In this document: positions 19,387-58,873 of the stretch, in pieces | How the letters are laid out: every line of letters begins with the position of its first letter | How positions within the stretch are numbered: position 1 is the first letter of the stretch | Assembly (NCBI GenBank): GCA_043228905.1 | Contig: JBHGNT010000011.1 | Span: forward strand, 14,446,001-14,510,000 | Reading direction: 5' to 3' | DNA length: 64,000 nt | From: Azolla caroliniana | Taxonomy: Eukaryota; Plantae; Polypodiophyta | Made by a program: the position numbers and the translations under genes | Notes under the pieces: generated by a model | Databases searched by the model: none | What the model saw: the letters and a program-made list of their open reading frames with translations, nothing else | Told to the model about the DNA's origin: nothing

Positions 19387-20226
19387 TTGCAACCTTTTTG
19401 TAAGGTTGGTTATTGTATTGTCTCTTTGTGAAATAAGAAAGTCTTTTGTGTCTCTCTCTCTCTCTCTCTCTCTGTGCACGACCTACAATCTGTCATACGC
19501 AGGTACTCAGAAGAAATCGAATGCTTCTTGATCTTCCGCACAGACGACTTCGTCTACAACATCTGGTATCAGAGCTTGCACAGCATTCGGTCCTTCAATC
19601 CGCTGTCGGCCGTCGTCACCGCCTGCACAGCATTCGGTTCTTCACTTCATCACGGCCTGCACAGTATTCGCGTCATTCGAAGAAAGAGAGAAGAAGAACA
19701 AAAACGAGGTTTGCACCTCATCGCGTTAGATCCTCTTGCTTGGAGTAAGCCATCAGGTTGTACTCTGTTCCTTGTGATCGTAACCGCTCGAGGTGAAATC
19801 CCCTTGTGCATCATTGACACGATCGTGCTCCATTCGGTTAAACGGCATCCGAAAAGGTCATTAAACGCTGCTCGCTGCTCGTTGTAACCACTCGGTGCAG
19901 ATCGGTCTCAAGACAACAACCCCAATTCGCGCTTCATCCGGCTGATCGACATTCGAGAGGATCAGTTGGATCTGTCTCTCTCGTCGCTGCAGCCACCCGA
20001 AGCAGAATCGGTCCAGATAATCTGTTTCAATAATCGGTATTCGGCAACATTCGGGAAGACCAGTCGGTTCTGTCCCTCAAGCTACCGAAGTCAATTCGAG
20101 CAAGTTCCGAAGCCGAACCGACTCGGGTTCAAATCCGACTAGAACGATATCGGGTGAGCCAACCGGCTGCACCCCAACAAGGTTCGTAGTCAACTCCGAA
20201 CCGAGCTTCGTCAACCGAAACCGAAT

Positions 20227-34983: not shown

Positions 34984-37592
34984 AGGCTGGACCAATTTTC
35001 TCCGTCCCAACTCAATTGGCGCATGCCGGTGGATGCGCGGTTAGGTGGGGGCGGATGTCGTGAAGAAAACCGTCCATAAGCGGAATCGATGCAGAGGAGC
35101 GTAGGAACCGGCTCTTCTCGAATGTTGTCCATAGAAGATCTTAGGTGGGTAGGGAGTAAAGGGGAAACGACTTCTTCCTCGCCTATAAAAGGAGGGAGAC
35201 GAGGAGGGAAAAGGGATCGCGGAGAGTCGAGGACGAAGTGCTGCCGATTTGCGTGCGAAGGCTTCCCTCTCTCTCTCTGGTTCGCAAACTCCATAGCTTC
35301 CTTCTGTGCAGGTTTCGGGAGGCTCGCGCTGCTCTAAGGAATGCCCGAGTGCTTCCGGCAGCACCTCCAACCTGCTCCTGTCTTTCTGTGCGTTTACGAA
35401 CAGGCATCGGCATCTGTTCGCCGGCCTGTTCGGTTGTAACCGACTTCGTGGTTTTGTTGTCTTCGTATTCTTGTTGTTTGTCTTTGTTAATACATACATA
35501 CATTCATGTCTTTCTGTGTCGTTGTCCCACTTGCGTCTTTGCGTCGAAGGGCCGTGTCCTTGTGGATCTACGCTCGCACGAAGAGGGTCTCTTCTCCTTC
35601 CTCTCTTGCTCTTTGGTACAGGACCCCCGAGGTTCCGCCTCATTCCACGCATCCGCGAGGAAACCCTCGACAGCATGTAGCAATGACTTTACCTAGTAAA
35701 GCCCCAATGCGAGGAAGAACGTTCCTCCACTTCTTCCTCAAACCAAGGAATGCAGCCGAAAAAACCATGTTAGATTCCTAATCCTGTAAAATGTCATCCA
35801 CCTTAACATTATGCGACCATTTGTGAAAGGAAATTCACGCACCTTCCACACCTGCCTCCTTAATCGCCAAAAGCTTGTTGACAGACTCCTCATCTGCCAA
35901 TTCTGTTGGGAATCGACGCTTCGATTCACCTTCTTCACTCGGCCACAACCAAGTAATCTTCGAATCAATGCAGCAGAAAATAGGAACCACAGAGAGAAAC
36001 ACACGAATACACAGGGATTAACGTGGAAAACCCTAGATGGGAAAAACCACGGGAGTACAAGACTCCAAACCAACACTATACAAAGAGAAGTATACAATGG
36101 CGAGCTGCAAGGTGACGACCTTGAGCTCGCTGTCCTCGCCACAGGCGGCGGAAATATACAGAGGCGTCGTCCTCTTCCTCTCTCTCACGCTCTATCTCTC
36201 TCTCTCTCTCTCTCTCTCACGGCTGCTCCCTCTTCACTCCTCTTGAGTGGAAAAACAGAAAAATGATCAGCAGCACTAAAACAGTTTGCCCTAAGTCATA
36301 TTTATACATATATGACTTTGGGGCTATTTACAACTGTAGCCTCAGGGGCCCATAGCAAACATATTCACGGATATGTCCCTTCATCCGGATCGCTCTCCGG
36401 GTACATTCGTCATCCGGCTCCGAAGCCGGGGTCTTCATCATCCGGTTCCGAAACCGAAACCGGGCTCGTCGGCATTCATCTCCGACATCCGACCATCCCA
36501 TCCGAAGGGACTATAATCCCGACAAACTCCCCCTTCACTTCGGCATGGGATGTCTTTCCAATCCGATCCTCTTCCGGCATGCTTCCAGCTTGTCGAGTGT
36601 GAGCACCTTGGTCAGCATATCCGACCCGTTCTCGTCCGTGTGGATCTTTGTCAGCACGAACTCCTTGTCTTCTATCCTTTCCCAGATCCAGTGATATCTT
36701 CGCTGGATGTGCTTCGTCCGGGAGTGATAGGCCGCGTTCTTCGCAAGGTGGATTGCACTCTGACTGTCGCAGTAGAGTCGGTACTCCTCCTGCCGGATAC
36801 CGAGCTCTCTAATGAAGTCCTTCATCCATATTATTTCCTTGCCGGCTTCAACAGCTGCCATGTACTCCGCCTCCGTGGTTGACAACGCAACCGTCTTCTG
36901 CAGCCTCGACTGCCACGAAACGGCTCCCCCTGCATACGTCATCACATACCCTGATGTGGACCGGCTGGTATCTGCATCAGCCGACATATCCGAATCGGTG
37001 AAGCCGTCGAGTTCGGGCTTACCGGAGTCGAATCGGAGGCACACGTTTGCCGTGCCTTTCAGGTATCGGAGTATCCACTTGGCCGCGTTCCAATGCTCTT
37101 TGCCGGGATTGCTCATGTACCGGCTCACCACTCCGACTGCATATCCTATGTCCGGTCTCGTACACACCATGGCGTACATCAAGCTCCCGACGGCTGAGGC
37201 ATACGGCACTTTCATCATATCCTCCTTTTCAGCCTTTGTCTTGGGACTTTGCTTGCTGGACAGCTTGCAGTTTGTCGGGAGGGTCGATCCGACCGGTCTT
37301 GCTTCCGACATGTTGAACCGGTGAAGCACCTTCGTCACGTACTTCTCCTGTGACAGCCACAACTGCTTCTTCTTCCGGTCCCGGATGATGTGCATCCCTA
37401 GTATTTGCCTCGCCGGACCCAGGTCCTTCATTGAGAAGGTTCGGTGAAGAGCCTTCTTCAGCATCCATATCTTGACCTGGTCCCGTCCGACGATCAACAT
37501 GTCGTCCACGTACAGGAGGAGTATTAGAAAGTCTCCTCCTTCGAACTTCTTCACAAACACGCAGTGGTCGGACTGCGTTTTGAGGTACCCTT

Positions 37593-40500
37593 TGTTGGGG
37601 ACAAGGTCGTCAATGCGGAAGATCAAGGAGCATTCGATTGCTGTTGAATACCTGCGTATGACAGTTTCTAGGTCGTTGCACAGAGAGAGAGAGAGAGAGA
37701 GACACAAAAGACTCTTTATTCATAAAGCAAGAATACAACATCCAACCTTACAACAAGGTTACAAGGTCACTATATATAGTGACCGACTTAGGGCAACTAC
37801 CCTTTATGCTAATTACGTAAATGGCCAAAACGGGATAGTGTGAATACGTCCATTATACACATGTATTCGACACTCCCCCGTAATGGGCGTATACATGGGT
37901 TATCTTAGATTACAGGTATAGACTTAGGTTCTCGGACATATCAGCTTTGTTCGAGTCGGCAGGGTCCGAAGGCAGAAGACCGAACTGGTCGGGTCGGAAC
38001 AGTTGAAGCCGATCATTAAGCAACTGATGTCGGTTGTCGGGAACCATCCTGCTCTGTGTCCGGCTCTAACCGGACTGGTTTGTCGTTACGCCCATCTGAT
38101 GCCGAAGAGACCGAAAACGGTCTGCCGAAAGACACTTGGTCATTCCATCTGCGACATTGTCGGTTGTGGATATTTTCTCTAGACCGATTTTCCCTGAAAT
38201 GACGCAGTCCCGAACGAAGTGATATCGAACGTCGATATGTTTGGAGGCGTTGTGGTGAACCGGATTTTTCGACAAGGCAACAGCACCTTGACTGTCGCTG
38301 TAGACAACTGGAGCTGAGTCATGGTCGACTTGTCGAAACGTGTGTGCCAGCCGACCGAGCCACAAAGCTTCTTTTGCTGCGTCGGACGCAGCTACATATT
38401 CTGCTTCGGTCGTTGAGGTCGTTGTGCACTCCTGAAGTTTCGACTTCCACGAGATTGTTCCATTGCCGAATTTGAAGCAGTATCCGGTTGTTGATTTCCG
38501 ACTGTCTATACAGCCGGCGAAATCCGAGTCGGTCTAACCGACTACGCCTGAGGTTCGGTTCGGACCGAAAAGAATGCCGTGGTCTTTTGTGCCAGCCAGA
38601 TATCTGAACACATGCTTGACTGCGTTCCAATGCGATCGGCCAGGATTGTGCATAAATCTGCTAACGACTCCTACGGCGTGAGAAATATCAGGCCGTGTCG
38701 CGACCATCAGGTACATAAGGGAGCCGACTGCCGGTGCATACGGTACCGACTTCATATCTTCCCCCTCCGAACCGGATGTCGGGCAGTCTCGCTGAGAGAG
38801 CCGAAGATTCATGGGGAGCGGGGTTGAAGCAGATTTGGCTGATTGCATGTTGAAGCGTTCCAAGACACGTCCGATATAGTCGGTCTGAGACAAAAAAAGA
38901 TGTCGTTTATCGCGATGCCGACTAATCTTCATGCCAAGGATGTGTCGTGCCGGACCGAGGTCCTTCATGGCAAACTTCAACCGCAGTTGCCGAACGAGAT
39001 CGGCAAGTTCGCCCGCGTGGCGTCCAGAAATTAGCATGTCGTCCACGTAAATGATGAGGAAGATGGGTGATCCATCTTGAGCTGTGTTGGTGAAGAGACA
39101 ATGGTCCTCATCGCTTTTGGAGAAGCCGATCGATTGGATGAAGTCGTCGAACTTCTTGTACCATTGTCGTGGTGCCTGTTTGAGGCCGTATAGACTCTTC
39201 CTGAGTCGGCAGACTAGATGTTCTTGGCCAGTTGCCACGAAGCCTTTTGGCTGCTCCATATAAATTTCCTCTTCAAGATCACCATGGAGGAAGGCTGTTT
39301 TGACATCTAGCTGAATCAGCTCCAAGTTGTCGGCTGCCACTACGCCGAGTAGGAAACGAAGGGTTGTCATTTTCACCACTGGTGAAAAAATCTCGTCGAA
39401 GTCGACGCCATATTCTTGTCGGAAGCCCTTCGCAACTAATCTGGCCTTGTACTTTGGGGTGGTCGAATCAGACGTCTCTTTTAGTCGATAAACCCACTTG
39501 CAAGGAAGAGCACGTCGGTTCCTAGGTAATTCGACCAGATCCCAAGTCTTGTTCGCCCGAATGGAGTGCATTTCCGACTCCATCGCCAGATGCCAGGTGG
39601 CGGAATCGACAGATGTCGATGCTTCTTCGTAAGACGTCGGTTCGCCGGCGTCGGTGAAGAAAATTCCAGGAGAATACCTCTCCGGAGGTTGCGACAGTCT
39701 CTCGGATCGTCGAGGTATGATTGGACTGGTCGCATCGGGTATCGAGGTCAGATGGTCCGAAAGCGGATTGTTCTGTTGTGCCGAGTCGGAGTTGTCCGAG
39801 TCGGTAGTGTAAGGTTCAGCTACCCGTGAAGCTGACCGTGTGTTGAGAGCGGGGCCTTCTTGAAGGGTCGGCACATCGGAAAATGTTACCCTTCGGACTT
39901 CGATTGGTTTTTCGACTGATGGAGTCATAGCCGACTCGTTGAACACAACGTCCGAACTTCGGACGATTTGTCTGCGTTCGGGATCCCAGAGTCGGTATCC
40001 CATTTCGCCGTCGGATCCATATCCGAGGAAAATGCATTTCCTGGACCGAGGTGCAAGTTTTCGGCGATCATCTTTCGGAATAAGGGCGTACGCCTCGCAT
40101 CCGAAGATCCTCAGCTTGTCGTAATTCGGCTTACTGCCGATCCATAGTTCTTGAGGAATTTGAAGTCCTAGAGGTCTACTTGGCGACATATTGATTATGT
40201 GTACTGCCGTGAGTAGAGCCTCTGCCCAGAAGCCATCCGACAGTCCGGAGTGTTGGAGCATGGAAACTATCCTTTCTTGGATTGTCCGATTCATTCGTTC
40301 GGCAATCCCGTTTTGCTCCGGACTGTGTGGTGCCGTAAATTCACGTCGGATGCCGCGTTGTCGGCAGAATTTGACGAATTCATCGGATTTGAACTCTCCC
40401 CCATTGTCTGTCCGAAAGCATTTCAGCTTTCGGTCGGTTTGATTTTCTACCATAGCGAGCCAATCGGAGAAGATCGAGAAGACACGATCTTTGGTGCGAA

Positions 40501-43033
40501 TTGGATAAGCCCACACCTTTCGAGTCGAATCGTCAATAAAACTGACGAAGTAAGAGGCACCGCCTAGAGACTGATGCGGCATTGGGCCACAGACGTCCGA
40601 ATGGACTAAATCGAGAGGTCTCGTTTCTCTTGGTGCTGATGTCGGGTGTGATGCGGCTGCTTGTTTGCCATACTGACAATGCTCGCAGAATTGATGGTCG
40701 GAGAAGGAGAGTTTGGGGATGTATCCGGCTCTAGATAGATGCGTAATGCCGGCCTTGCTGAGGTGTCCTAATCTGCGGTGCCATAGTGATGACACAGGAA
40801 TGTCCACCAAAAACAGGTTACCCTCTCTGAGCGTAACATGTAACGGATACAGTGAGTGTATCTTGGGTCCTCTAGCAAGCAGGAGGTTCCCCCTGTGGAG
40901 TGTCCACCCTCCCGAAGAAAAACCGGCACGAATGCCGTCTTCATCTAGTTGTCCGACTGAGATCAATGGCCTTGAGAGCTCGGGTACATGTCGGACATTG
41001 TGAAGTACAAGTGTAGAGCCACCTGCAAGGTTGAGCTCTACTGTGCCGATTCCGATGATGTCACAGTGTTGTGAGTTGCCGACTCGAACTGAGTCGGAGT
41101 GACGGATCGTATATTGCCGAAATTGGGATCGATGAGGAGTCACGTGAAATGACGCACCCGAATCCAAGAGCCATGTGCTCGATTCTTCAGTCGTGAGCAG
41201 AACTTCTGATCCGACTGGATTTTCGATTGATAGTATATTCGGGTCGTCCGGTAGTACATCAGCCGAGAAGCTGACGTAATTGATCTCCTCATGCCGGCCA
41301 CTCTTCTTGTTGTTCTTGTTCTTGAGTGCGCGGCAGTCGGCTTTGATGTGTCCGGGTTTCTTGCAATAGTTGCAGATTCGGTTATCCCGTGACTGGCTCC
41401 GTCTTCGCTGATTGTTCGGCGGCCGTGAGGAATCTCTTCCTCGTATGTTCGATCGATCTGTCGAACCTTGTACTACATAAGCGTCGTCTGTTGAGTCTTT
41501 GGCGAAAGACTTTCTCCGAGCTGGTTCGGTCAGGATTGCGCTCGTGACTTCGGAGTATTTAACAGCCGTGGTTGACGCGTTGCACACGGTTGTGACGAAA
41601 GTTTCCCATGATGAGGGAAGGCTGCTCATGAGTATCATTGCTCTGAGTTCATCCTCGATTGCCATCCCCTGTGACGAGATTTGGGAGCTTATGCTTTCGT
41701 ACTCATTGAGGTGTGCTTGAACCGAATCGGATTCATTCATCCGCAAGTTGTAGAGGCGCCGGATCAGAAACATCTTCGTTGCGGCGACCTTCTTTTCGTA
41801 AGTGTCCGACAGTGTTTTCCACAGTTCGAATGCTGTCGTACACGATTGCACCGTAAAATATACCGTTTCCGATAGGTGCATCCGAATCGTGGCGCGGACG
41901 ATTCTGTCCAGCTTCTGCCACTCAATTGGTTTGTATCCTTCTGGAGGTTCTTCATTTTCGATGGGATCGATTTGTCCCTTGACTATGAGATAGTCCTGCA
42001 TTTGCTCTTTCCAGAAGTTGAAGTTCGATCCATCGAACTTTCGTAGACTCATTTCTGACGAGCCGGATGTTGATGCCATCAAATTCGGTTTCGGTTGACG
42101 AAGCTCGGTTCGGAGTTGACTACGAACCTTGTTGGAGTGCAGCCGGTTGGCTCACCCGATATCGTTCTAGTCGGATTTGAACCCGAGTCGGTTCGGCTTC
42201 GGAACTTGCTCGAGTTGACTCCGGTAGCTTGAGGGACAGAACCGACTGGTCTTCCCGAATGTTGCCGAGTCGGAGTGAGCCCGGTTCGCTTCGGATATAT
42301 ATGCCGAATACCGATTATTGAAACCGATTATCTGGACCGATTCTGCTTCGGTTGACTGCAGCGACGAGAGAGACGGATCCAACTGATCCTCTCGAATGTC
42401 GATCAGCCAGATGAAGCACGAATTTGGGGTTGTTGTCTTGAGACCGATCTGCACCGAGTGGTTACAACGAGCGGCGAGCAGCGTTTAATGACCTTTTCGG
42501 ATGCCGTTTAACCGAATGGAGCACGATCGTGTCAATGATGCACAAGGAGATTTCACCTCGAGCGGTTACGATCCCAAGGAACAGAGTACAACCTGATGGC
42601 TTACTCCAAGCAAGAGGATCTAACGCGATGAGGTGCAAACCTCGTTTTTGTTCTTCTTCTCTCTTTCTTCGAATGACGCGAGGAAACCGAATGCTGAGAC
42701 GACGGCCGACAGCGGATTGAAGGACCGACTACTGTGCAGGCTCTGATACCAGATGTTGGGGACAAGGTCGTCAATGCGGAAGATCAAGGAGCATTCGATT
42801 GCTGTTGAATACCTGCGTATGACAGTTTCTAGGTCGTTGCACAGAGAGAGAGAGAGAGAGAGACACAAAAGACTCTTTATTCATAAAGCAAGAATACAAC
42901 ATCCAACCTTACAACAAGGTTACAAGGTCACTATATATAGTGACCGACTTAGGGCAACTACCCTTTATGCTAATTACGTAAATGGCCAAAACGGGATAGT
43001 GTGAATACGTCCATTATACACATGTATTCGACA
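37593..43033 (-). mobile_element. Copia family B element, second copy
   Basis: LTRs 37593-37872 and 42754-43033 (280 bp, no difference seen); TSD CCCTT; Met PBS 42740-42751; PPT 37873-37880. Confidence 0.97.
38066..42082 (-). pseudogene. Family B Gag-Pol with one premature stop at the start of RNase H
   Basis: 1182-aa ORF nearly identical to 20227..24243; TAC to TAG at 38534-38536. Confidence 0.93.
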
Positions 43034-46000
43034 CCCTTCGTCGGTCATGAAGGAGTCGAACTTCCGGTACCATTGCCGGGGAGCCTGCTTCAGTCCATAA
43101 AGGCTCTTCTTCAACCGGCATACCAGGTGCTCCTTCCCTTTCTTCTCGAATCCTTCCGGTTGCTGCATGTAGATCTCTTCATCGAGGTCACCGTGAAGAA
43201 ATGCCGTCTTCACGTCCATCTGTTCTACCTCGAGGTCCATGCTTGCCGCTATGCTCAGCACCGTCCGGATGGAGGTCATCTTCACTACCGGGGCAAATAT
43301 CTCGTCGAAGTCGACGCCCTTCTTCTGCTGAAACCCCTTCACCACGATCCTGGCTTTGTATCTCGGGGGGTTTCCGGCATCTCCCGGTTTCAGCTTGAAC
43401 ACCCACTTGTTTCGAAGTGCCCGCTTTCCTTTCGGCAACTCCACAAGTTCATATGTGTGGTTCTCATGCAGGGAATCCATCTCGTCCTGCATGGCACTCA
43501 ACCACCTACGGCTCTGGGTGTCATGTTTTGCTTCTTCAAAGCTCTCCGGCTCCCCCTCGTCGGTTAGCAGCACGTGCTCTGGTTCCGGAAATCTCCGGGG
43601 GGGCCTTCTCTCTCTTAGAGGATATCTCCGTTCCGGAGCTTCGGTAACTGGTTCTTCCGATTCTTCTTCATCCGAATCCATTTCGGGATCGGGGCCAGTT
43701 CCGGTATCATTTTCATCTTCTTCGGCCGGTTCTGTTTCTACACCGTCTTCGGCCGGATCCTCGAGTGCTAACCGGTCCCTTGCCGGTCGGGACTGCTCCT
43801 CGTAGAGTTGATCCTCACCGGTCGACTTGGAGCTCTTCATCTTCTTCTCCGATTCCCAGTCGGCGAGTGTCTTGTTCTCCATGAAGATGATGTCTCGACT
43901 CCTGAATATCTTCTTGTCGACCGGGTCCCATACTCGGTAGCCGAACTCGTCGTCGCCGTAACCGAGGAATATGCATGGCCGGGTCTTTGGATCTAGCTTT
44001 CCTCTCCGGTCCTTTGCCACATGCACGTATGCGAGACACCCGAACACCTTCAGATGCCGGTAGGACACTTCCTTACCGGTCCACACTTTCTGCGGCGTGT
44101 CTCCGTCCAAAGGTACTGAGGGTGATCTGTTTATCACGTATGTCGCCGTCGACATTGCCTCAGCCCAAAACCCCTTGGGTAATTTCGCATGCGCCAGCAT
44201 ACTCCGGACCCTCTCCATTATGGTCCGGTTCATCCTCTCGGCCAGCCCGTTTAGTTCCGGCGTCTTCGGCACAGTAAACTCGAGCCGGATTCCCTTCGAG
44301 CGACAGTACTCCTGGAACTGCCCCCGGTATTCCCCTCCGTTATCCGCTCGTATCGCTTTCAGCTTCTTGCCGGATTCCCTTTCCACTCTCGCGTGGAGTT
44401 CTTTGAAGACGCACAACACTTGGTCCTTTATCTTCAGCGGTGCCGTCCACAGCTTTCGGCTGTGATCATCAATGAATGTTACGAAGTACTGGGCTCCGCC
44501 ATGTGACTTCGTTTCTACCTGACACACATCAGTGTGCACCAACTCCAATGGTGCGCTACGTCTCGTCGGTGGCCTTGAGTGGAAGGAGGTTCGGTTCTGC
44601 TTACCGGCCAGGCAATCGGTGCACTTCTCCAGGTGCACATGCTTCACTGGAATAAGGTTGTCTTCTGCAAGCCTCTTCATCCCCTTCTCACTCATGTGAC
44701 ACAGTCTTTTGTGCCACAGCTCACCGGCAGTGTCGGCTGCCACATTCAGCTCTTCAGGACATAACCGGGCATTCATCAGGTACAGTGTGTTGTCTTTCCG
44801 GGCCCGAGCCACTATCAGGCTCCCCTTGCTGAACTTCATTACGCCGTTTCGGATGCTACCTGTGTAGCCTTCATCGTCTAGCCTCCCGGCCGAAATCAGG
44901 TTCAATCGAACCTCCGGAACGTGTCGGACATCCTTCAGCAGCATTTTGCATCCGGTCGGGGTTGTCAACCACACGTCTCCTATGCCGGCAATCCGGCACG
45001 TACCTTCATTTCCCATCCGAACACAGCCATGCTCACCGGTTGTGTAGGATGAGAAGTATCTTCTCTCCGGGGTCAGGTGGAACGATGCTCCTGAATCGAC
45101 CACCTAGGTCGTCTCATCGCCGGCAATGTTTAGTTCACCTTCTTCGGTGATGAGCATGATTTCTTCCTCACTTGCCGCGAGTGCCGTTGTTCCTTTCCGG
45201 TCCTGCCCTCGCCGATCCGAACCTCTCCGGTCCGTGGCTCCCCGGTATGCACCGTTTCTTTCCGGTGACTTCTTCGAATCGGTGTCGTCGGCTCCGTTGT
45301 CTTTTCGGTAATGCCGACAATTCTTTCGGAAGTGCCCCGGCTTCCCACAGTGGAAGCATGTGGGCCTTCCTCTTGACTGCGACCGGGTCCCCGACTTTTC
45401 CCGTCTTTGCGGACTCCGGTTCCATTGTCTTCCCCGATCCGATTCGGTAAGCAGCGCCTTCGTGTCGGAGGCCGGTTCTTTATCTCTCCGACGCGCTTCT
45501 TCGTTCAAAATACTTGTCTTTACCGTTTGTAAGGACAAGTTATCTTCGGTGCAGGAGGTGCTGAGAGTCACCACCAAGTTCTCCCAGCTTTCCGGCAATG
45601 TACACATCAGGATGATGGCTTGCATTGCATCCTCCAACGGGAACTTGATCGCCGCAAGCTGATTCACGAATCCCATGAACGTGGTTACGTGTTCCACCAT
45701 ACTCTCGCCGTCCCGGTACTTGAGATTCACTATCTTCCTCATCAGGGAGGTCCGGTTCAACGCATTCTTCCTCTCATAGAGGCCCGACAGCTTCCGCCAC
45801 ATCTCATATGCGTTGGTGTCGTTCGCCACATGTTGTAGAACGCTCACGTCGACGTATTGCCGAATGGTTGCAACGGCTTTCCGGTTCAGAAGCCTCCATT
45901 CCGACTCAAGTACCCCCTTCGGTATTTCCGACCTGTCAATCGGTTCGTACAGGTCCCGAACAATCAGAAGATCCTCCATCTTGATCTTCCAGTCGGCGTA

Positions 46001-46953
46001 ATTCTGCGCATTCAGCACCATCATCCCCGGCTGCCCGCTGCCGCCGCCTTCCATTTTCTGCAGCAGCTCGCTCTGATACCAGTTTGTTGGGAATCGACGC
46101 TTCGATTCACCTTCTTCACTCGGCCACAACCAAGTAATCTTCGAATCAATGCAGCAGAAAATAGGAACCACAGAGAGAAACACACGAATACACAGGGATT
46201 AACGTGGAAAACCCTAGATGGGAAAAACCACGGGAGTACAAGACTCCAAACCAACACTATACAAAGAGAAGTATACAATGGCGAGCTGCAAGGCGACGAC
46301 CTTGAGCTCGCTGTCCTCGCCACAGGCGGCGGAAATATACAGAGGCGTCGTCCTCTTCCTCTCTCTCACGCTCTATCTCTCTCTCTCTCTCTCTCTCTCA
46401 CGGCTGCTCCCTCTTCACTCCTCTTGAGTGGAAAAACAGAAAAATGATCAGCAGCACTAAAACAGTTTGCCCTAAGTCATATTTATACATATATGACTTT
46501 GGGGCTATTTACAACTGTAGCCTCAGGGGCCCATAGCAAACATATTCACGGATATGTCCCTGCATCCGGATCGCTCTCCGGGTACATTCGTCATCCGGCT
46601 CCGAAGCCGGGGTCTTCATCATCCGGTTCCGAAACCGAAACCGGGCTCGTCGGCATTCATCTCCGACATCCGACCATCCCATCCGAAGGGACTATAATCC
46701 CGACAAATTCCACATGGTCATAAATTGAATGTCAAGGATATTAGCCACTTCCTCCGAAAAAGCAGCATATAAAATATGATGGAGTTCCGATCGATATGGT
46801 CTTGAACCCTGCACCTGCACAACCAAGGAAAATGCCTCCAACCTATGTACCTCACTTACCGCTGTGAGTTTATCCTCCTCTGACAACACGAGGTCGATTG
46901 TCTCATCACATAGATGAGGCAATGATTGGGGGGGTGCATTGGACTCCCCTGCT

Positions 46954-47625
46954 TGTTACGGGCATGACCATATAATATCCCGTGGTGAGAATTTGCCGTA
47001 GTATTCTATACGTGTGGATAAGTGTGAGGGTTAAATGAGAGTGTAAAGAAGGGGAGGATTACTTTTAATTCTCGGGATTGAGACAACCCATTAGGCCAAG
47101 TGTGAACTTGCCTGGGGGCCTTGGGTATCACTATAAATAAGAGGCCTAGCTACCCTCATTAGATCATATCTCTAATATCTTTTGACTACGTCGAGACTTT
47201 GTTTCGCCAGCACCAGGTACGACTCGATGCCACGGTGGTGGTATGGGACGTCGATCGAGGCTCGAGTCCATCTCGATCCCTTCGCTCGTGGGTGGTCGGG
47301 TGGATCGGCGCCCTTCTTTCTCTCTCTCCTTTCTATCTATCTATCTATCATTCTTTTCTCCTTATCATACGCTTACATTAAATCATAGCTCTGATACCAA
47401 CTATTAGAGATATGATCTAATGAGGGTAGCTAGGCCTCTTATTTATAGCGATACCCAAGGCCCCCAAGCAAGTTCACACTTGGCCTAATGGGTTGTCTCA
47501 ATCCCGAGGATTAAAAGTATTCCTCCCCTTCTTTACACTCTCGTTTAACCTTCACACTTATACATGTGTATAGAATACTACGGTAAATTCTCACCACGGG
47601 ATATTATATGGTCATGCCCGTAACA
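46954..47625. mobile_element. 672-bp non-coding element with 224-bp inverted LTR-like arms and a Met PBS
   Basis: Arms 46954-47177 and 47402-47625 (~11 mismatches); TG..CA outer ends; TSD CTGCT/TTGCT; minus-strand TGGTATCAGAGC at 47388-47399. Confidence 0.88.
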
Positions 47626-48324
47626 TTGCTCGTATGTACAGTCCAGCCGCAGATGACGTATGTGGTTGTTCTATAGCCGACCTCTTGTTCGTTTGATATG
47701 TACCTGACACGGTTGTTGCATTGTTCGCGCCTCCCGCGACTTGTTTTGTAGTTGTCGATGCCTTCTGGATTTTACAATATTATGTTCAAACTGTCCACTT
47801 TATAGATTGAAAATGCTAGACTAAGAAATAATTTCCCTTTATATAGTAGGATTTACAAGATTTTTGTTACCCATTCCTTTGGGTGAACACCTTCGATAGA
47901 TCTGCGGCTATCGGTATTCAAGGGCGTGGTACGTGAAGGCTCGTAACAGAGGCGTCGAGAGAGAGACAGGGCTCAGAGAGAAAACACTAGCGAGGTCTTG
48001 ATAGGCGTGGGCGGCGTTGAAATCATAGGTATGAATCAAAGCACAGACACATGGAGCAAAATGGGCACAAATCAGATATATTATTGCGACAGAAAAAGAT
48101 TACAGAACACGGCCTACGGCCGGTGACCTTACCAGATTATCTAGTTACGAGAGACTAAGCTAGTGCTTCCGCCTATATTTTTCTTCTCTCCCTCCTCTGA
48201 GGTACTGGTCCTCATTTAAATAACTTTTCCCCTAATACACAGCTGAGCCGTCGGTGGCCCATGATACTCGGACTCAGCGTTTGCTAATTTCCTAATTTTA
48301 CATTTCTGTCCTCCGAACAACACC

Positions 48325-48370
48325 TGGCACGCCCGTGGGACAGGACCTTGTCCGTCGGACCCACGACTTA
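48325..48370 (-). other. tRNA-Arg 3'-half-like sequence at the PPT position
   Basis: Minus strand AAGTCGTGGGTCCGA-CGGACAAGGTCCT-GTCCCACGGGCGTGCCA, ending 2 nt before the 3' LTR. Confidence 0.8.
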
Positions 48371-51139
48371 CAAAAATACTAACAATATTACAAAAATTGC
48401 CTTTTAGGCGTGATCCTCGTTTCATTCCTCTTTTAAGATGTCGAGGATGTTTTCGGGGTCTGGGGTGGTGGCAGGGTGGTCTGGTTGGACTGTCGATGCA
48501 GGGGGTTGAGTTTGGTCCAGGGGTGTCATATCTTCTCGGGCGTCCGCCTCAGGTGCGGCCGATTCTTCTGGTGGGGGTGTGGGTTCGAGGGCGTTGACCT
48601 CTACTTCGACTGGATCTGGTACCGTGTGGGCGTCCATTGGATGTCTGTTGGCCGGGGCAAGTTCCTCCTGTGCCGTGTCCGTGATCCCCTTGCTGGAAGG
48701 TTCTTCCTTCTACTCTGTGGCCGTTGGAGGGCTGGTTGGGATGGCTGCGAGTCGTTCTCGTTCGAAGGCTTCTGCTTCCAAGCGAAACATCATCTGCCCG
48801 TCATTGAAGTCCTCCATTATTTGCTCAATTGCCGCGGTGTGAGATTTTGCCAAGGACTGGTAATCCTCGGTTAAATCTGCACGCAGGTTTTGTATGCTGG
48901 CTTCGTCCATTTTGTAGAAGCCGCGGCCCTCCTTCCGTCGGTTCTCGGCGTCGGCGCGTAAAATATGCAATTCGGTAGCTTGGGCTTCCCATTCGTCTCC
49001 TGCGCGACTTAATGTTTCCTCGACCTTTTTGGTAAGGTGTTGGCGCTGTTTCTCGATCAGTATTCTGATGCGTGTCTCATCCATGCCGGGTTGTGCTCGG
49101 ATGGCTGCTAATTCCTGTTTTAAGCCGTCGACCTCGGCATGAAGCTTCTTTGCTCGTAGTTCATAGGTGGCTTGAGTGTTCTTTGCATCCGCGGTTACGA
49201 GCTGGATAGCCTGCTCATAACACTTGGTTAGTTCTTCGGTGGCTTTCTCCCGTTCTTTTTGACACGCGGCCCGGACTTGTTCCCATTCGACGATTCTCTC
49301 TTCTTGTAGGGCGAAGTAGGAATCCGATAATTCGTCTTTTTGTTCCGAAAGTAGCCTGCATTTGATGAAAAACTCGTCAGCCATTTCTTTAAGGGTCGTA
49401 CGCTGACTCTGCAGCTCAGCATTCTCCGCGATCATTCTCTCCTCCCGTTGGCGATTTCTTTCCTCCTGCTGGTGGTTGCAGTCTTTCGCATTGTCGAGCG
49501 CGGCCTGCAAGTCTAGGACCTCCTTCTCTTTCTTTGCCACTGTGGCTGCGTATTCCTCCAGCTTGCTTTTGAGTTCGGCTTCTTTGCCCGCGGCTTGCGC
49601 TTGTACCTGGCCCAGTGCTTCATTCTGCTCGTGTATCCTTTGGTCGGCCTGGGCTCTAATCTCAGCCATCTGCTTGGAAGCTTCTTCTTTTAGGCAAGCC
49701 ATCGCCTCCTAATGCCTTTGTTCGTGTCTCTCGGTTCGCCGTTGTTCTTCTTTAAGCTCCGCGCGGTAATCCCGGAGCGGGGGTTCTGTCTAGGTTGCCA
49801 CCTCCTTGGATGCACGAGGGGGTGGTATCTCGGTCTTCTCCATGGGCGTGGCCGCCTCGGTTGTTGTGCAGGCAACGACCATTTGTAACGAGTCCGTTTG
49901 TGTACTAGCCTGCATCGTCAGGATTGAATCTGTGACGGTGCTTTCATTCATCATTGTTATGCGTGGAGGGGCTGGGAGGGCCTCGGTGGTCGTGGTCGGA
50001 AGGCTCAAGAGTTGTTGTTCCAGCCGGTTTTGCTCCCAGGCTCCCAACTTCTGTTTCGCAGCGTGCCATAATTCTATAGCCATCTTAGCCTGCTTTTGGG
50101 CTAGTTTTATCTTTCGGGCCATGTCTTTGGCTGCACGCGTAGTGCGATCCAGGTCCCTATATGCCTCGATAAGGGTCGTGTTCAACTCGGGGACCTCCAT
50201 GAGGAGAGCGGCCTATTTTGCCTGCTTCTTTCTCCTGATTTTTTTGTAAAGCCCTGACGTCCTGGGGCTCAATTTCACCTAATAGCGCGCGTTGAATCAT
50301 TTTTGTTTCGGTGTGCTCTTCCGCCATTCGAGCGGCTGCCGCGCCTTGGGCTCTGGCGAGGAAGTCGACCAGCTAGAATGTCGTACCGAGGCGTAGGAGC
50401 GCACTAAATTCGTAAGCCTCTGCGGGGAGGTCCTTATACCCGAGGACTTCATCCTTCGAGATCTGTGTTGTCTGCCCATGCTCGATCTTTCCCTGGTTCA
50501 GCGATGCCTCCTCAGGGATCATGGCCAGGTTGCTCTGACTAACAACTAAGGCTTGGTCTTGTTGTGGCTCTTTCTGTTCTGCCGAGAACTCGCGGTTGAG
50601 TCGTCTTCTCTTGCTCGGCTGTGTTTGGGGTTCCGGGGCCGGTAGTGTCTTTTCCTCCGCCTACTTCCTTTTCTGGGGTCGTGGTGGTGCTGCCTGCTGT
50701 GTGTTGGGGCGTGGGCTAGACCCTGGGGAAGTTACCGAGGGGCGCGACGTTGGCTGTCGAATGGTGACATCATCTGCCGTGTTGTCCTCTACGGCTACCT
50801 CCTCCCATTCTTGGCAGGTCTCGGAAACTGCCCTTTTCTGTTGGGGTTGGGTGGGTGGTGGTGCAGATGCGGGGTTATGGTCGGCGGTAGGAGGTGAAGG
50901 CGATGTGGGCTCCTCCCATGCTTCATGGCTGATGGCAACGAATTTCTCTTTCTGCCTTCGTGGTGGTGGTGGGGACGTGAGTGTGCGAGGGGAAGGAATA
51001 GAAGAGGGTGGGTATAGAACCATCAAAAAGTGGGTAAGAACAGACAACATCTTCTTACCCGACCGAATTAAAGCTAAGGCGGCGCGGAGTTCTTCGCTTG
51101 TGATGATTCCCCAATCGATTCTATTTCCTTCATACGCGC

Positions 51140-52110
51140 TGTCGTGAAGATCCGTCACTACGCGCGGATCGTGAGGCGGAACCGTCGGGGTTCTGGACCA
51201 GAAGGATTTAGAGTCGATACAAGCTTTGGCGAGAAAGTACTTAAGATAGATTGGGAAAGAGAGAAGTTGAGATTACACGATTGATTTGAAAACGAATTTC
51301 TTCCTCTTAATTTTCATAAAAAAAATACCGTGTTTTTTCTCCTCCCCCTTCCCTCTTTTATAGATGCTCTCATGCATATGATGCATGCGAGGGTACAAGA
51401 CATGCATAAATTGCATGTTTGCCATTTGGCGCTTATGTATTACATGTGGTGCATGATAACCATGTCACTCATTTTAGTTCTCATGTATGAGAATTTACAT
51501 GTAAAAGTGCAATGATAGAAATATAATTTCAACTAAATAGCATGGCTTAATGGCAAGCCATTTGACTCCTAACTTGGAGGTGCAAGGTTCAAATCCTTAC
51601 TTGCCCTCCTTGTATATGTAAATATGTATATATATTAATATATTTATTTATCTAGTCGCCGGATACCGGTGCCGCCGTCGGATGCCGTCGGATGCCGCCG
51701 GATCATCGGCTCCATCGCCGGTCCGGTTTTGGTTGGCCAAAACCCTTTACGAGTAGCTAGCCCACCTCCACTCTTAGTTCAAGTTACCTTGAACTCTCTA
51801 TGCTCCACACATAGACACAAAGATAATATCTTTTGCTCCACCTTATATATGATGAGAGCTGTATTTGTTGTGCCTATGTGGGATATCTCACAATTTTCTC
51901 CTTTCCTTTTACAAACTTTATACCCTCATATCTTGACATTTAGTTGTCCGTTTCTCGTGTAATAAAGTGCATTCGAAACCTCCATCATTTTGTACTTAGA
52001 TATTAAATCTATTTAAAATGTTATCTTCACAATTATTGTACTACGTGATTCATACTCGATTTCGTACGTTTTATAGGATTTTCACACTATTGCCGAAAAT
52101 CTTCACGACA
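51140..52110 (-). mobile_element. Solo LTR (971 bp) related to the tRNA-Trp Gypsy family
   Basis: 12-bp terminal inverted repeat TGTCGTGAAGAT; TSD GCGC; shares the TGTCGTGAAGA start, CTATAAAAG and GGTTCCGCCTCA with LTR 28704-29320. Confidence 0.88.
51538..51606 (+). other. tRNA-derived (Arg-like) sequence with Pol III A and B boxes; not a canonical tRNA gene
   Basis: A box TGGCTTAATGG 51543-51553; loop CT-CCT-AA; B box GGTTCAAATCC 51586-51596; acceptor and anticodon stems do not pair well. Confidence 0.7.
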
Positions 52111-53013
52111 GCGCTGATGATGATGGTTGCCTTGTTCTGCGGCATGCTCGTTGGGTTCGTATGCACGAACACATACTCCATTAATATACGAGCAATCTCC
52201 CCGAAAGCTCTGTTCGGACCGCCATACGTGCGATATGCCTTCCCTGAGGCTGAGTGCTCACCGAAGTACGCTTTCATCTTCGATGCCGGGGGTATGTCGA
52301 CCTCATGGTCCCCTTCCCGTTGCAGGTCCAAAACAACCCGAAGCACGTTGTTGGTGATGGCTTCGGGACCTATATGTTTAGCCACACCTTGGGCATCTGG
52401 GTGCGTGGGGGCATCGATGATCTTCAGGTAATCGCCCATTCCTCGTTCCTGGAGCCAGGCGCGGGTTTCTGTTGAAGCGGTAAGAGGCATGGTGGAGATG
52501 GAGACGGGGTTCAACTGTGTGGAAGCGTGAAGAAGAGTGATGAGGCGAGGGCGAGACAGAGAAGGAACAGCAGGAAGGGGAAGTTCAGCATAGGGGTTAT
52601 GAGAGCAAAAGAGGGCTTGAGAGCAAAGAGCGTTTAGCGCGATGAGAGCGAGACGGGGTTTCTGAGCTTGAGAGCGATGGAGATTGGGAGCGATAATGAA
52701 CTTCTGTGTTTGTGTTGCGTTTTGGAAACGGTTTTAGTAACTTACTCCTAGGGTTTTGTGCCTGAAGCGAATCCTGAAGATTCTGAGTCGTGGGTGCCAT
52801 AATAAGTGACTAACACCACGTGTCCTGAAGGTGAGTGGGGTGCTTCTAATGCTTTGCATGTGCTTAAATAGGTACTAAATGAGTGGTGGCGAGGGGTGCT
52901 CCTAAATTTGTGGGTGCGTAGGTGGGTGGTGTAGGTGTAGCTAATCGGTGGCTAAACTATGGTTAATCCTACCTACTACTACTTTTATTAATTTCACAAA
53001 GGTGGGTGAGTCC

Positions 53014-56000
53014 TTATTCAGGGGGACACGTGGCCTCCTCCGTGGTGGTTTCCCGAAACGGGTTGGGTGGTGTAGTGCCTCGATATGGTCGAAGTTGGAA
53101 ACCATTGACCCAGCTTTTGACAGTGTCGCCGGCGAGTGTGCCGAGCTGGAACGTCCCATTGAACTCGTCGATAATCCAGAATGGACCGGTCCACCGAAAT
53201 CTTAATTTTCCCGGCATAGACCCGAGTCGTGTTTGAAAAAGAAGAACCGGTTTGCCGATGGTGAGCTCTTTTTCCAGCCCCTGTTGATGTCGATCCACGA
53301 AAGCCTTGCGTTGTCGTTGGCGTTGTTCGAGTTGGGCCATACTCTCTATCCTATCTTTGCCGAGTTCGAGGAGTTGTTCCAGCCGGTATTGCTCGGATTG
53401 GGCCTCGAGGAGCCGTGCTTTGATTTGAACTCAGAGGCTCGGGACTTGGAACTCGACGGGCATTACGGCTTCTAACCCGAACGCCATTCGAAAGGGGGTT
53501 GATTGGATGCTTGTTTTGAAAGTCGTACGATACGCCCACAGCGCGCTCTGGAGTTTGTCATCCCAATCGGTCCTGTTTTCATTGACGATCTTCTTCAGTA
53601 TGGTTTGGAGGATTTTATTGGTCGATTCCGCCAAGCCGTTCGCCTGCGGGTAGTATGGTGTGCTTTTCTTGTGCACCATCGCGTAGTGGTGTGTAAGTTC
53701 ACGTATTATATGATTGATGAAGTGCCCACCTTGATCACTAACGAGCTCGATTGGGCATCCGTAATCGCACCAGAGGTGCTCGTACACGAATTTAGTCGTG
53801 GATGCCGTCGTGTTGTCTCGGAGTGCCTTAGCCTCGACCCATTTGGTGCAGTAATCCGTGGCAACGATAATATACCTATTCCCTGTACGGGCCGCGAGTG
53901 GTTTGAAAGGGCCTACAAAATCCAAACCCCATTTTTGAAATGGGTCCAACGGAAGAATCGGCTGGTGTGGCATCCGTGACTATTCCATTGGTTGCCCCAG
54001 TCGTTGGCACAAATCGCACTGCCGGCAAAACTCGTGAGCGTCTTTCTTTGTTGTCGGCCACCACAATCCACTTTGCCAAATTTTCCTTGCCGTGGAATCC
54101 CCGGCGTAGTGCCCCCCAGCTACTCCCTGGTGGGCTTCCTGAAGAACGACGTTCTTCTCGAATTGCCAAATCGCTCGGCGCCATATGCCGTCCGAGCCTT
54201 TGTGGTAGAGAATCTCCGAGATGAGGCAAAAATTCCGACTACGCACTGCTAGGCATTTTCTCGTGTCAAGGTGCATGTGCTCGGGAGGTACACCGGTAGT
54301 GAGAAAATGGGTCATCTCCGTGATCCATTCATCTCCGTTATCGTCTGGTATCGTGGTCAAGTTAAATAGGCTGGTGTCTGGTAGCTCGTCGTACGTTGTT
54401 TTCGCCGGTTCCCCTGACTCAAGACGACTCAAGTAGTCGGCGACGGCATGTTGTACCCCGGGTCGATGCTGAATCTGGAAATCAAACTCTTGTAGTAGGA
54501 GCATCCACCGAGCCAACCGTCCGGTGAGGGCTTGTTTATTGACCAAATAAAGAAGGGTCGAGTGATCCACGTGAAAGGTAAATTTTCGGCCCAAGAGGTA
54601 ATGCCGAAATTTATTGATGCTATAAATCATACCGAGGGCCTCCCGCTCGGTGGTGGAGTAATTCTTTTCCGCGATCGAGAGCTGTCGGCTGGCGTAGTAC
54701 ACGGGCCTATACCAATTCGGGGGTGTGCATTGCATCAGGGCACTTCCGATGGCGATGTCTGAAGCATCTACGAAGACATGAAACGGTTCGGACCAAACCG
54801 GAGACTGGACCACCAGGGCATGTGACAGCATTCGTTTCAAGGTCTGATAGGCCGTGTCCTCGATTGACGTCCATTGGAAAGGAAGGCGATGGATTGTCGC
54901 GTGTAAAGGTGTCGCGAAATCGGCCAGGTGTCGTATCATTCGGTTGTGCCACCGGATCTGTCCCAAAAAACGGCTTAGTGCCTTAGCGTTCGAGGGTGCG
55001 GTAGCGGTCAGGATTGCCTTTACTTTATCCGGGTCCATAGCGATGCCTTCTTGACTGACAATGTGGCCGAGAAGGTTGCCGCTGGTGACTAAGAACGCGC
55101 ATTTCGCCGGGTTTAAACTCAATCGAGCTTGGCGACATTGGTCCAGGCAAAGTCGTAACTGGGTCATGTGTTCCCGTCGATGGCCATACACGGTGAAATC
55201 GTCGAGAAAGACTTGCATGAACGACGGGATGTAGTCATGAAAGATTTCGGTGATGATGCGTTGGAACGTAGCCGGCGCCGTTTTTAGACCGAACATCATT
55301 ACTTCTGCTACAAAAACACCCCATTCCGTGACGAAAGCGGTTTTCTCCTGATCCTCCGGGTGCATTCTTATTTGGTTATAGCTGCTGAACCTGTTGAGGA
55401 AACTGTAGCATTCGTGGCCGGCTACCGTGTCGAGGATGTTGTCCGTGAATGGGAGAGGGAAACTGTCGGTGACTGTTGCCGCGTTAAGCTTCCGATAGTC
55501 GACGCAGACACGGATTTTTCCGTTCTTCTTTGGGACTACTACGATCGGGCTCAACCACGTGGCCCGTTTAACAGGGCGAATGAAGCCCACTCGGAGTAGT
55601 TTGTCGATTTCCTCTTTGACTTTAGCGGCGTAGTTGGGGTTCATCCTGTAGCGCCTCTGTTGAACCGGCCGAGTGTCAGGTAAGATGTGAATTTGATGTT
55701 GGTAGTATTGAGGATCCAGCCCCTTCATATCGGTGTAAGACCAAGCGAAAACATCCTAGTAGTCGGTGAGCAATCTTACGAGGCATGCCCGTTCTCCGGT
55801 TGGTAGATTATTGGCAATTTGTAACGTACGGGGATTCTCGTCCGCACCGAGGTTTATTGTTTCCAGGGTTGATGCTTTCACTCGTTGTGAAATGGCGAGT
55901 TCGCATTCGAAAGCCTCCCGAGCATGACGTAACTCAGCAACTGTGATTGGATCTGGTTCATCTTGGGGTGGTGACTCCTCCGTGACTTCCTCGTCTTTAG

Positions 56001-58219
56001 GTGACTCGATGGTTGGTAAGGCATTGATTTCGAAGAGAGGGATGATCGTGGGATGATCATCTAGGAAGTCATCGACCTCCTCATCGGCCAAACCGTCAAG
56101 CATATGGACCCCTTCCGCGTATAACGGCGAAGTGTTGAGGGTGACAGGGACTCGTTCTTCAGTGATGATCCGGACTTTTGTCTTGCCTCTTCGGAACGAG
56201 ATCATGTTGCGTTGCCAATGTTGCTTGATATTCGCTGTACGCAACCATGGTCGACCTAGTAACATTGGGTAGGCGCCTTGTGTCTCCAGTCTTAGCACGA
56301 CGGCCAAGATCGTGAACATGTAGCCTCCGAGTGTGAAGTCGAGATGGCGGATTAAACCAAAAGGGGCATGGTTCCCATTGATTCAGGCCAAGATTGAGAC
56401 ACGTTGACTCGCTAATAACGTTTACGCCGGATACGCCGTCGATGATGCATCCGTGCAGGTCTTGTCCCTTAATGATGATTCGCACGGCTGGGTTCTGAGA
56501 ATCCATGAGTGGTGGACCGGTTCCTGCTTCGGTGAGGTGTACCGGTGGCGTCACGGGCTTAGTATTGGCCTGGAGTGCCGCCAAGGTGTCCCGAAATCTC
56601 GGCATGAGTGGTAACAATTTATGTAGGGGCAGCGAGATGCGGGAGTTGGTAAGAACATCCCATAGTTGGTCGTCCTCCTCCGACGTGGACGATGCCGAGG
56701 TTTGTGGTGCTTCACTAGGCCCGTCTCTCATGTCAGTTTGCATGCGTACGGCATTATTTTTATTGGCCGTGTCGACCCATTCTTTTGCTGCCTGACGGAT
56801 ATCATCCTGGATTTGCCACTGAGTAGTCTGCGCTTTACTCCGGGTAGTGACCGTTTCAACATCGGCCATGATACTGTTCACCGCGGGTGCCTTGCCACGG
56901 TTGGTTGTTGGACATTGTGTGGCGTAGTGGCCTGGTTGGTTACATTTAAAACATGTCACGTTGGCCGAGCTGCTAGGGTCCACTCGGTCTGTGTGTGGAA
57001 GCTGTTGTTGTTGATTCTCAGTCTCGTTTGGTGGTGGGTTGTTCCGAGGTGCGTTGGAGTTGCGCTGGTCATTTTGAGGAGCGTCCTGTCGGCGGTTGTC
57101 GTTAGGTCTTCTATTGTTGCGTGTGTTGCGGTTGCCGTTTCGCCGATCAATGCGTGAGTTCCGTCGGTCATACCGGTCATCGCGATCGTCATCATATCGA
57201 GCATAATCGTCGTGTCGTTCATCGCGATAATGATCACGGCGGTCATCATGTCGGTAGTCGTCGTCTCGGCGCCGTCGATCCGAGGATCACGGTCGGTCGT
57301 TATCCTGGTCTCGGTAGACATATCGCTCGTCCTGCCGAGAGTATGTATTTCGTGGCTCGATCTGGTGGACCGGTGCCGCCGTTGTGCGGTTCAGCATATT
57401 ATATTCGCACTGCTCGACCGTGTGAGCTCAAGACTGACAGATCGGACACTGTGTTCAGTGGGGACATTCGAGGGCCAGGTGCCCTGATCCTGAACACACC
57501 GTGCATTGGAGGGCTTGGCGAAAGCGATTTTCCTCTTGGGGACGAGCGTTTTGCAAGGATGTCATCGAGAAGGCCGCGCCGTGCTTGGTCCGATCGAGGG
57601 CGAGAACCCGCGTTATGACTTGTTCGATAGTATGGTTGGCGAAATTTGTAAGTGCGAGAGTCGTTCGGAGAGGCTCTCGTAAACTGGATAGGAAAGTGTC
57701 CAGTATATGTTGTGCCGAGACATCATCGGCCACTTGTCTGTAGAGATCCTGGAACCGGATCGTGAACTGCGCGACCGTTTCGTGCGGTTCCTAGCATATA
57801 GAGAAGAATTGTCGGAGCAGTTCCCGTTTAGGCACCTCGCGATGAAAAAGTTCAAGGAACTTTGTGCGCACGATTTGGAAAGTGGTGGCCTCTCCTATTT
57901 CGAGGCGAGAGTACCAACGTGCGGCCGGTCCATCGAGGGAGAGTGTGAACTCGGCAATCTTTGAGGCATCGATTTCGGCCAGCGTGAGGCGGTGCGTTGA
58001 GTGGTTGGCCTGCCACGTGGATATGAAGGCACGGATGTGTGACTCCGCGTCTGGTCCGTCGGTGTATCGTGGGTATGGGTACGGCATGATGTCGTACTGT
58101 GGGTCTTCTAGTAGCACCGGAAAAGGGTTTAGTTCCGGTTGATTGACCTCCGGAGGGCTCGACGGGGGTTTTGGTGGTGAATCAACTCGCGATCGAGTGT
58201 CCAATGGCGAGGATTGCAC
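53014..58219 (-). pseudogene. Gypsy gag-PR-RT-RNase H-integrase, fragmented
   Basis: CFKCNQPGHYATQC, IIDGVSG and LLGRPWL, FGLKTAPATFQR, FLDDF, VDASDIAIG, WGLDFVGP, SDQGGHF, YYPQANGLAE, RWTGPF. Confidence 0.93.
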
Positions 58220-58392
58220 TGGGGAAGCCTCTGATTGATCGGGAAAGGATTGGTCAGTGACCGCCGAGTCGGAAGTTCCTTCGATTGGCTCAGGGCATCA
58301 GGAGGGTGGCCGAGACCTCGTGGTGCGAGAGGGCGTCGTAACGGCGGCTCGTGGTTACCTTCAACGAAGTTCGCTGTGCACTCACTGTTGTA

Positions 58393-58405
58393 ACCGGGCG
58401 TGCCA
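58393..58405 (-). other. Primer-binding site, tRNA-Arg(UCU)-like
   Basis: TGGCACGCCCGGT, 5 nt downstream of the 5' LTR on the coding strand. Confidence 0.75.
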
Positions 58406-58873
58406 AATTGTGTTACCCATTCCTTTGGGTGAACACCTTCGATAGATCTGCGGCTATCGGTATTGAAGGGCGTGGTACGTGAAGGCTCGTAACAGAGGCG
58501 TTGAGAGAGAGACAGGGCTCAGAGAGAAAACACTAGCGAGGTCTTGATAGGCGTGGGCGGCATTGAAATCATAGGTATGAATCAAAGCACAGACACATGG
58601 AGCAAAATGGGCACAAATCAGATATATTACTGCGACAGAAAAAGATTACAGAACACGGCCTACGGCCGGTGACCTTACCAGATTATCTAGTTACGAGGGA
58701 CTAAGCTAGTGCTTCCGCCTATATTTTTCTTCTCTCCCTCCTCTAAGGTACTGGTCCTCGTTTAAATAACTTTTCCCCTAATACACAGCCGAGCCGTCGG
58801 TGGCCTGTGATACTCGGACTCGGCGTTTGCTAATTTCCTAATTTTACATTTCTGTCCTCTGGACAACAATTTT

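Follow-up and report, generated by a model that had tools for sequence, protein, structure and literature searches.

A 672-bp element at positions 46954–47625 of the window (the whole 64-kb stretch of DNA analysed here) is, judging from its sequence, an asymmetric tail-to-tail LTR palindrome centred on a PBS loop at 47397–47401, and it entered its site in one step with a 5-bp duplication. We consider it most probable, at roughly 0.6, that it originated as aberrant LTR-region DNA of a Ty3/gypsy chromovirus, which carried a U3 terminus at both ends and was inserted by integrase as a single unit.

A repeat search and a pairwise alignment delimited two inverted arms of 224 nt each (46954–47177 and 47402–47625), which are themselves 224 nt apart and differ from each other at 11 positions without any gap (95.1% identity). 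This identity has its limits precisely at TGTTAC on the outer side and at TAATA on the inner side; the outer end of both arms reads TGTTACGGGC and the inner end ATCTCTAATA, and CTATAAATA faces inward in each of them, at 47131–47139 on the plus strand and at 47440–47448 on the minus strand. The sequence TGGTATCAGAGC, a perfect PBS for the initiator tRNA-Met (iMet), lies 2 nt (GT) inside the right arm, no purine tract or PPT adjoins either arm, and both U3 starts point into the flanks. A preliminary description of this DNA had already reported the inverted arms of about 95% identity around a 224-bp spacer, the PBS 2 nt from the right arm, the CTGCT/TTGCT flanks, the TAATA inner ends and the missing PPT, and all of these were present. 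The description had called the whole an inverted-LTR mini-element and had suggested a Copia element as the source; this source, and a reading of the arms as complete short LTRs of a TRIM with the spacer as its internal domain, gave way to the assignments below, in which arms and spacer are parts of one and the same LTR of about 500 bp. The features of the element and its two neighbours, in window positions, are as follows.

35904–46705, minus strand: left neighbouring LTR retrotransposon, with LTRs of about 620 bp that are 99.5% identical and the duplication AATTC
46949–46953, no strand: left copy of the target-site duplication, CTGCT; one CTGCT is kept in the paralogous empty site
46954–47167, plus strand: U3 (214 nt) of the left LTR copy, as aligned to the canonical LTRs in contigs L012, L019, L034, L035 and L030
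47163–47177, plus strand: first 15-nt direct repeat, ATCAT followed by ATCTCTAATA, marked by an alignment gap relative to the canonical LTRs (columns 238–248)
47178–47381, plus strand: R-U5 body of the same LTR, continuous with the left arm, in the same order and orientation as in related contigs
47382–47396, plus strand: second 15-nt direct repeat, at the position of the U5 end, identical to the first at 13 of 15 positions
47388–47399, minus strand: PBS for the initiator tRNA-Met; canonical contig L012 has the same U5 end, 2 nt and PBS
47397–47401, no strand: palindrome centre CCAAC (GT plus TGG on the minus strand), whose flanking 15-nt arms match at 13 of 15 positions
47402–47625, minus strand: right arm, the same LTR in which U3 passes straight into the final 10 nt of U5, as given by the repeat search and pairwise alignment
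47626–47630, no strand: right copy of the target-site duplication, TTGCT, with one C>T change, from the flank comparison and the empty site
47865–58868, strand not given: right neighbouring LTR retrotransposon, with LTRs of about 460 bp that are 97% identical and the duplication ATTTT

Since the spacer corresponds to the R-U5 body and is continuous with the left arm, we place the centre of the palindrome at 47397–47401, with a left copy of 443 nt and a right copy of 224 nt. In a global alignment the right copy lacked 219 nt (gap from 221 to 440), and the missing nucleotides are the stretch between the two 15-nt direct repeats. The left U3 terminates in GATCAT, 34 nt past the first T of TATAAATA (47133) and thus approximately where transcription is expected to start. 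The last 10 nt of the first 15-nt repeat are a copy of the U5 end and form, together with the following T, an 11-nt insert at the U3/R border, while the two deviating bases of the second repeat, both G, are the complement bases of the PBS. Relative to related contigs, the R-U5 body carries a 26-nt deletion and a short TCTA repeat. All inner joints fall at functional borders of the LTR (U3/R, the U5 end and the PBS), each with microhomology. Folded as RNA, the 672-bp unit gave one long hairpin (−468.6 kcal/mol, z = −46), in agreement with the folding potential that had been suggested from reading the sequence. Its longest ORF spans 68 codons, exact look-up of five of its ORFs in a collection of 15 billion proteins returned none of them, and an Rfam search of the window gave no match.

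To identify the source of the arms, we scanned metagenome contigs for the 27-nt arm terminus, which yielded 45 loci in plant-associated ENA assemblies. The arm was 92–96% identical to LTRs in L012, L019, L034, L030 and L035, and in all seven contigs that reached far enough (L012, L019, L030, L034, L035, L017 and L014) the window spacer sequence came next after the arm, with unchanged orientation, an arrangement that we refer to as canonical. Given this contiguity, the family LTR should be about 500 bp long and end in ...CTCTAATA. Judging from these alignments, each arm is U3 (214 nt) plus the last 10 nt of U5 and not a whole LTR. Both copies in the window share the U3-to-U5-end junction and a ...CATTAGATCAT variant, neither of which was present in the canonical contigs; within the window and the related contigs, the junction occurred in the window only, once per arm, and the 11-nt insert at the U3/R border was found in none of the seven canonical contigs. 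A loose contig end at 47412, considered as a multi-copy left inner junction, turned out on alignment to be the canonical R/U3 junction lacking the 11-nt insert.

Contig L012 carries, in this order, an integrase-chromodomain ORF, a purine tract, the LTR, 2 nt and the PBS, and the canonical PPT-LTR-PBS order was also supported by L009 and L035. The ORF, which lies just upstream of the PPT and LTR, contains Integrase_H2C2, rve, SH3_Tf2-1 and Chromo domains, and its nearest named homologues, from the ferns Ceratopteris richardii and Adiantum nelumboides, are of the Ty3 type. This combination of integrase and chromodomain ORF, PPT, LTR of about 500 bp and iMet PBS identifies the source, on sequence grounds, as a very abundant Ty3/gypsy chromovirus and neither a Copia element nor a TRIM; the gene order, with the integrase-chromodomain ORF preceding the PPT and LTR, is that of gypsy elements, and the Copia origin was rejected for this reason together with the Ty3-type homologues. 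Exact look-up of the canonical integrase ORF, as delimited here, returned no record, and the best cluster representative led to a single contig of 2 kb, which breaks off after 190 nt of the LTR.

Several further copies of this LTR were seen among the related contigs. Deletion derivatives are common: in L032 (1489–1620) an internal deletion joins approximately position 46 to the R-U5 body, and L007 (1139–1287) carries two partial U3 ends in tandem. L017 (1660–2140) holds a probable solo LTR of a diverged subfamily, which ends in ...TCTAACA, with a proper CA, versus ...TAATA in the main subfamily, and which is flanked by CCCAAC on both sides, the left one offset by one base. In L019 (3075–3581), a cytochrome-P450-like N-terminal ORF is found at a distance of 1.3 kb downstream from a family LTR copy, which suggests that the chromovirus family is also located near genes.

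The window itself is a stack of nested LTR retrotransposons, and the 672-bp element occupies part of the 1.15 kb between two complete-looking ones, both of which also have 5-bp duplications. The left neighbour carries an iMet PBS at 46070–46081 on the minus strand. The window contains eight iMet-type PBS, seven of them perfect, compared to 0.19 expected per 64 kb, and its copia-like and gypsy-like elements seem to use this same primer. An element body of 4.4 kb is present twice, at 20041–24482 and 37827–42268, in opposite orientation, 98% identical and 13 kb apart; both bodies have LTRs of about 285 bp and an iMet PBS, and their arrangement could invert the intervening DNA. Arrays of a 17-bp tandem repeat lie near both ends of the window (1989–2629 and 59603–59801). 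An 18-nt match at 26781–26798 proved to be unrelated sequence.

To examine how the element entered this site, contigs of four public runs were aligned to window positions 46500–48000. In two of these runs (X1 and X3), a contig joined 46953 to 47651 with 20 letters in between; these letters align to 47631–47650, and CTGCT is present only once. This empty site, which is a diverged paralogue of the flank (about 86% identity over 117 nt) and not an allele, lacks exactly 46954–47630, that is, the 672 bp plus one pentamer, and the element therefore entered as one unit with a 5-bp duplication, as the preliminary description had proposed for a DNA with two U3-type ends. The flanks CTGCT and TTGCT match at four of five positions, for which (or for a better match) the calculated chance is about 0.016, and the single CTGCT of the empty site indicates that the right copy later underwent one C>T change. 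Precisely at 46953 and at 47625/47626, dozens of contigs pass from the arms into unrelated sequence, so that these positions represent the true termini of the element. Summed contig depth, which is not a copy number, reached 1e5–6e5 in the arms and in 47214–47315 compared to 20–280 in the flanks, so the arms and this segment are part of a repeat of very high abundance. Contigs from three studies and two coded organisms crossed one or both outer junctions without mismatch (spans 46750–46979, 47599–47893, 47600–47894 and 47600–47893), while for coded organism C (X7) the aligned contigs were all diverged.

Nine of the 11 differences between the arms are transitions and two are transversions, and at 10 of the 11 sites one of the arms holds the majority letter of the family, with six private changes on the left and four on the right, which argues that the arms were alike when the element formed. 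In relative terms the arms, at 95.1% identity, are older than the LTR pairs of the two neighbours (97.0% and 99.5%).

The origin that we favour would start from plus-strand strong-stop DNA (U3-R-U5-GT-PBS) that halted at its natural stop. The normal second jump would have failed to take place, and the last 9 nt of this DNA (TATCAGAGC) would instead have paired with the near-complementary U5 end (7–8 of 9 positions) of a plus-sense LTR strand, either its own or a sister strand, and copying back to U3 position 1 would then have produced a tail-to-tail LTR palindrome. Such a palindrome would have ...GTAACA-3', the terminus joined by integrase on the U3 side in a normal integration, at both ends, and could thus have undergone concerted insertion. 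Long perfect palindromes are unstable, and slippage from one 15-nt repeat to the other, at the stage of reverse transcription or afterwards, may have removed the R-U5 body of one arm; this scheme assumes that the source LTR already carried the 11-nt insert seen at the U3/R border of the long arm. A stable U5/PBS hairpin that drives the fold-back was discarded: as DNA, the U5-end/PBS hairpin has −0.7 kcal/mol, no better than shuffled sequences, and given this marginal energy the switch point appears to be only a microhomology. Self-priming of strong-stop DNA by retroviral reverse transcriptase is documented (PMC6088434), as is template switching that leads to complex plant LTR insertions (PMC1950507).

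The same end product, with an identical 5-bp duplication, would result if two incomplete cDNA ends, an LTR-only fragment and an LTR plus PBS, had been co-inserted via their U3 ends and their inner ends joined by host MMEJ with the help of the 8/9 match of the U5 end to the PBS complement. The inner joint indeed lies inside 9 nt of near-identity, as is typical of end joining, and the marginal energy of the hairpin is no argument against such a joining. We nevertheless consider this origin unlikely, given that both arms share the rare U3-to-U5-end junction as well as the sequence variant, a combination more readily explained by copying of one arm from the other, or of both from a single template. 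The present data would fit a strand switch and co-insertion followed by end joining alike.

The question whether the 672-bp form is unique or belongs to a family was addressed by searching for its diagnostic junctions. No second copy of the inner junctions was found in the window, in the 45 related contigs, a sample both small and biased, in IMG/VR or in prokaryote genomes, and scanning IMG/VR and the prokaryote genomes for the arm terminus returned nothing. A one-off is therefore likelier than a replicating class, and of the two options that the preliminary description had left side by side, the one-off aberrant strand-transfer product fits better than an undescribed non-autonomous class, against which stand the restriction of the junction to the window, among the DNA searched, and the canonical order in seven of seven contigs.

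Smaller palindromes of the same LTR were present in the related contigs. L043 (817–936) contains a 120-bp U3-U3 hairpin flanked by GGCGA and CATGG, that is, with no duplication, and L045 (796–925) one of 130 bp flanked by GAATA and AAATA, a 4/5 match and the only duplication-like flank among the small hairpins; these two share their inner breakpoints and lie at different loci. In L029, the region 2081–2134 consists of LTR positions 1–39 followed by the reverse complement of 55–1, which, as far as its sequence goes, is what one would expect of a strand that folded back at the AGAAT/ATTCT inverted repeat within the LTR, and L027 (1–107) holds a partial fourth hairpin. In these four, one arm starts at LTR position 54–58 and the other ends at 39, about 68 or about 105. 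Given that such hairpins of the same LTR exist in related contigs, the accident of U3-U3 palindrome formation seems recurrent. As an observation apart, L022 (1037–1260) contains a purine tract and, on the minus strand, a partial family LTR, followed by an inverted copy of LTR positions 1–58. This has the appearance of a full element that terminates at its 3' end in a U3-U3 fold-back, although the contig could be chimeric.

These hairpins also bear on the possibility that the 672-bp element belongs to a replicating non-autonomous family with inverted LTR ends, MITE-like and moved by the integrase of a retrotransposon. L043 and L045, with the same inner breakpoints at different loci and the GAATA/AAATA flanks of the latter, speak for such a family, and the ...CA-3' that integrase requires is offered at both ends of the 672-bp element. 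Against this speak the diagnostic junction, which occurred nowhere else in the window and related contigs, and the ORFs of the element, none of which is in the protein collection; the lack of both a PPT and a direct R repeat; and the lack of a duplication at L043. In addition, the arms of L043 and of L045 each carry the subfamily variants of their own copy, which favours repeated independent formation over the spread of one founder. We know of no copying route for such inverted-LTR DNA, nor of its excision by integrase, and regard a replicating family as improbable. We also consider rather unlikely a broader proposal, namely that plus-strand synthesis in the chromoviruses of this plant regularly yields U3-U3 palindromes, from hairpins of about 94–130 bp up to the 672-bp form and beyond, that these are efficiently integrated, and that some of the small ones are by now MITE-like families, spread by the integrase of retrotransposons and giving rise to hairpin small RNAs directed against their parent.

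A canonical element or solo LTR could also have been rearranged in place by inversion and deletion, or two nested insertions might mimic a unit. The densely nested surroundings (35904–46705 and 47865–58868) and the common internal deletions in this LTR family, such as that of L032, would be compatible with such a history. For this, however, an inversion would have to break precisely where the duplication meets the LTR terminus; a normal insertion has one U5 end beside the duplication, whereas both ends are U3 here; neither arm has a duplication of its own, the left arm being followed by TCTTT; and all inner joints coincide with functional LTR borders. We therefore judge a rearrangement in place to be very improbable. 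An assembly or sequencing artefact in the form of a fold-back chimera is scarcely credible: although the junctions supported by independent reads are the outer ones, a chimeric read would give identical arms, whereas these differ at 11 sites with a transition bias, and mismatch-free outer junctions came from three studies.

Taken as an integrated aberrant chromovirus DNA, the 672-bp locus is a fossil of failed reverse transcription, well preserved and mechanistically informative. With its inner joints at functional borders, it would record where chromovirus DNA synthesis failed, and it implies that integrase accepts DNA with two U3 ends in vivo. With neither a PPT nor a direct R repeat, the usual LTR route of replication is closed to the element; we consider it a decaying insertion, of which a hairpin transcript is the only plausible activity. 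As far as present evidence goes, this copy is a single decayed insertion in a nest of repeats and shows no sign of function; it would gain weight if such palindromes were frequent or mobile genome-wide. If they were frequent, they would lead directly from an active retrotransposon to a hairpin locus that could trigger silencing of that retrotransposon, and could explain some 'MITE-like' repeats that have no transposase.

Compared to known systems, the element resembles TRIMs in its size below 1 kb, its LTR-derived ends, its iMet PBS, its 5-bp duplication and its lack of coding capacity. It differs from them in that its repeats are inverted and not direct, no PPT is present, its arms are U3-only parts of a 500-bp chromovirus LTR and what would be the internal domain is the R-U5 of that LTR, and there is no family evidence. 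In maize, a Zma-SMART TRIM array has been pictured, without analysis, as 'two inverted TRIMs' within one duplication (PMC4717578, Fig. 2C), and shares with our element the inverted arrangement inside a single duplication. With MITEs and foldback elements it has in common the long terminal inverted repeats, the small size, the target duplication and the hairpin transcript; here, however, the inverted ends are retrotransposon LTR sequence, not DNA-transposon sequence, and the element contains a tRNA primer site. A 5-bp duplication matches LTR integrases and not the plant DNA-transposon superfamilies, and to our knowledge no transposase is related to the element. Ginger DNA transposons have inverted ends that start with TGT, a gypsy-related integrase of their own and 4-bp duplications, while DIRS are retroelements with inverted terminal repeats and a tyrosine recombinase that produce no duplication. 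Neither takes its ends from a resident LTR family, and the 5-bp duplication and the longest ORF of only 68 codons do not agree with DIRS. Its ends are homologous to the LTR of a family with integrase and chromodomain, as expected for a derivative of a Ty3/gypsy chromovirus LTR. The element also resembles snap-back strong-stop and template-switch products, in which stopped nascent DNA continues on a wrong template of the same sense and joints lie at U3/R, the U5 end and the PBS with microhomology (PMC6088434; PMC1950507). The described cases are minus-strand in vitro products regarded as dead ends, or tandem (direct) complex elements (PMC6088434; PMC1950507), whereas the product in our case appears to be of the plus-strand type, has two U3 ends and became integrated and fixed. 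By analogy, the 672-bp element is likely a cDNA of this snap-back or template-switch kind that became integrated.
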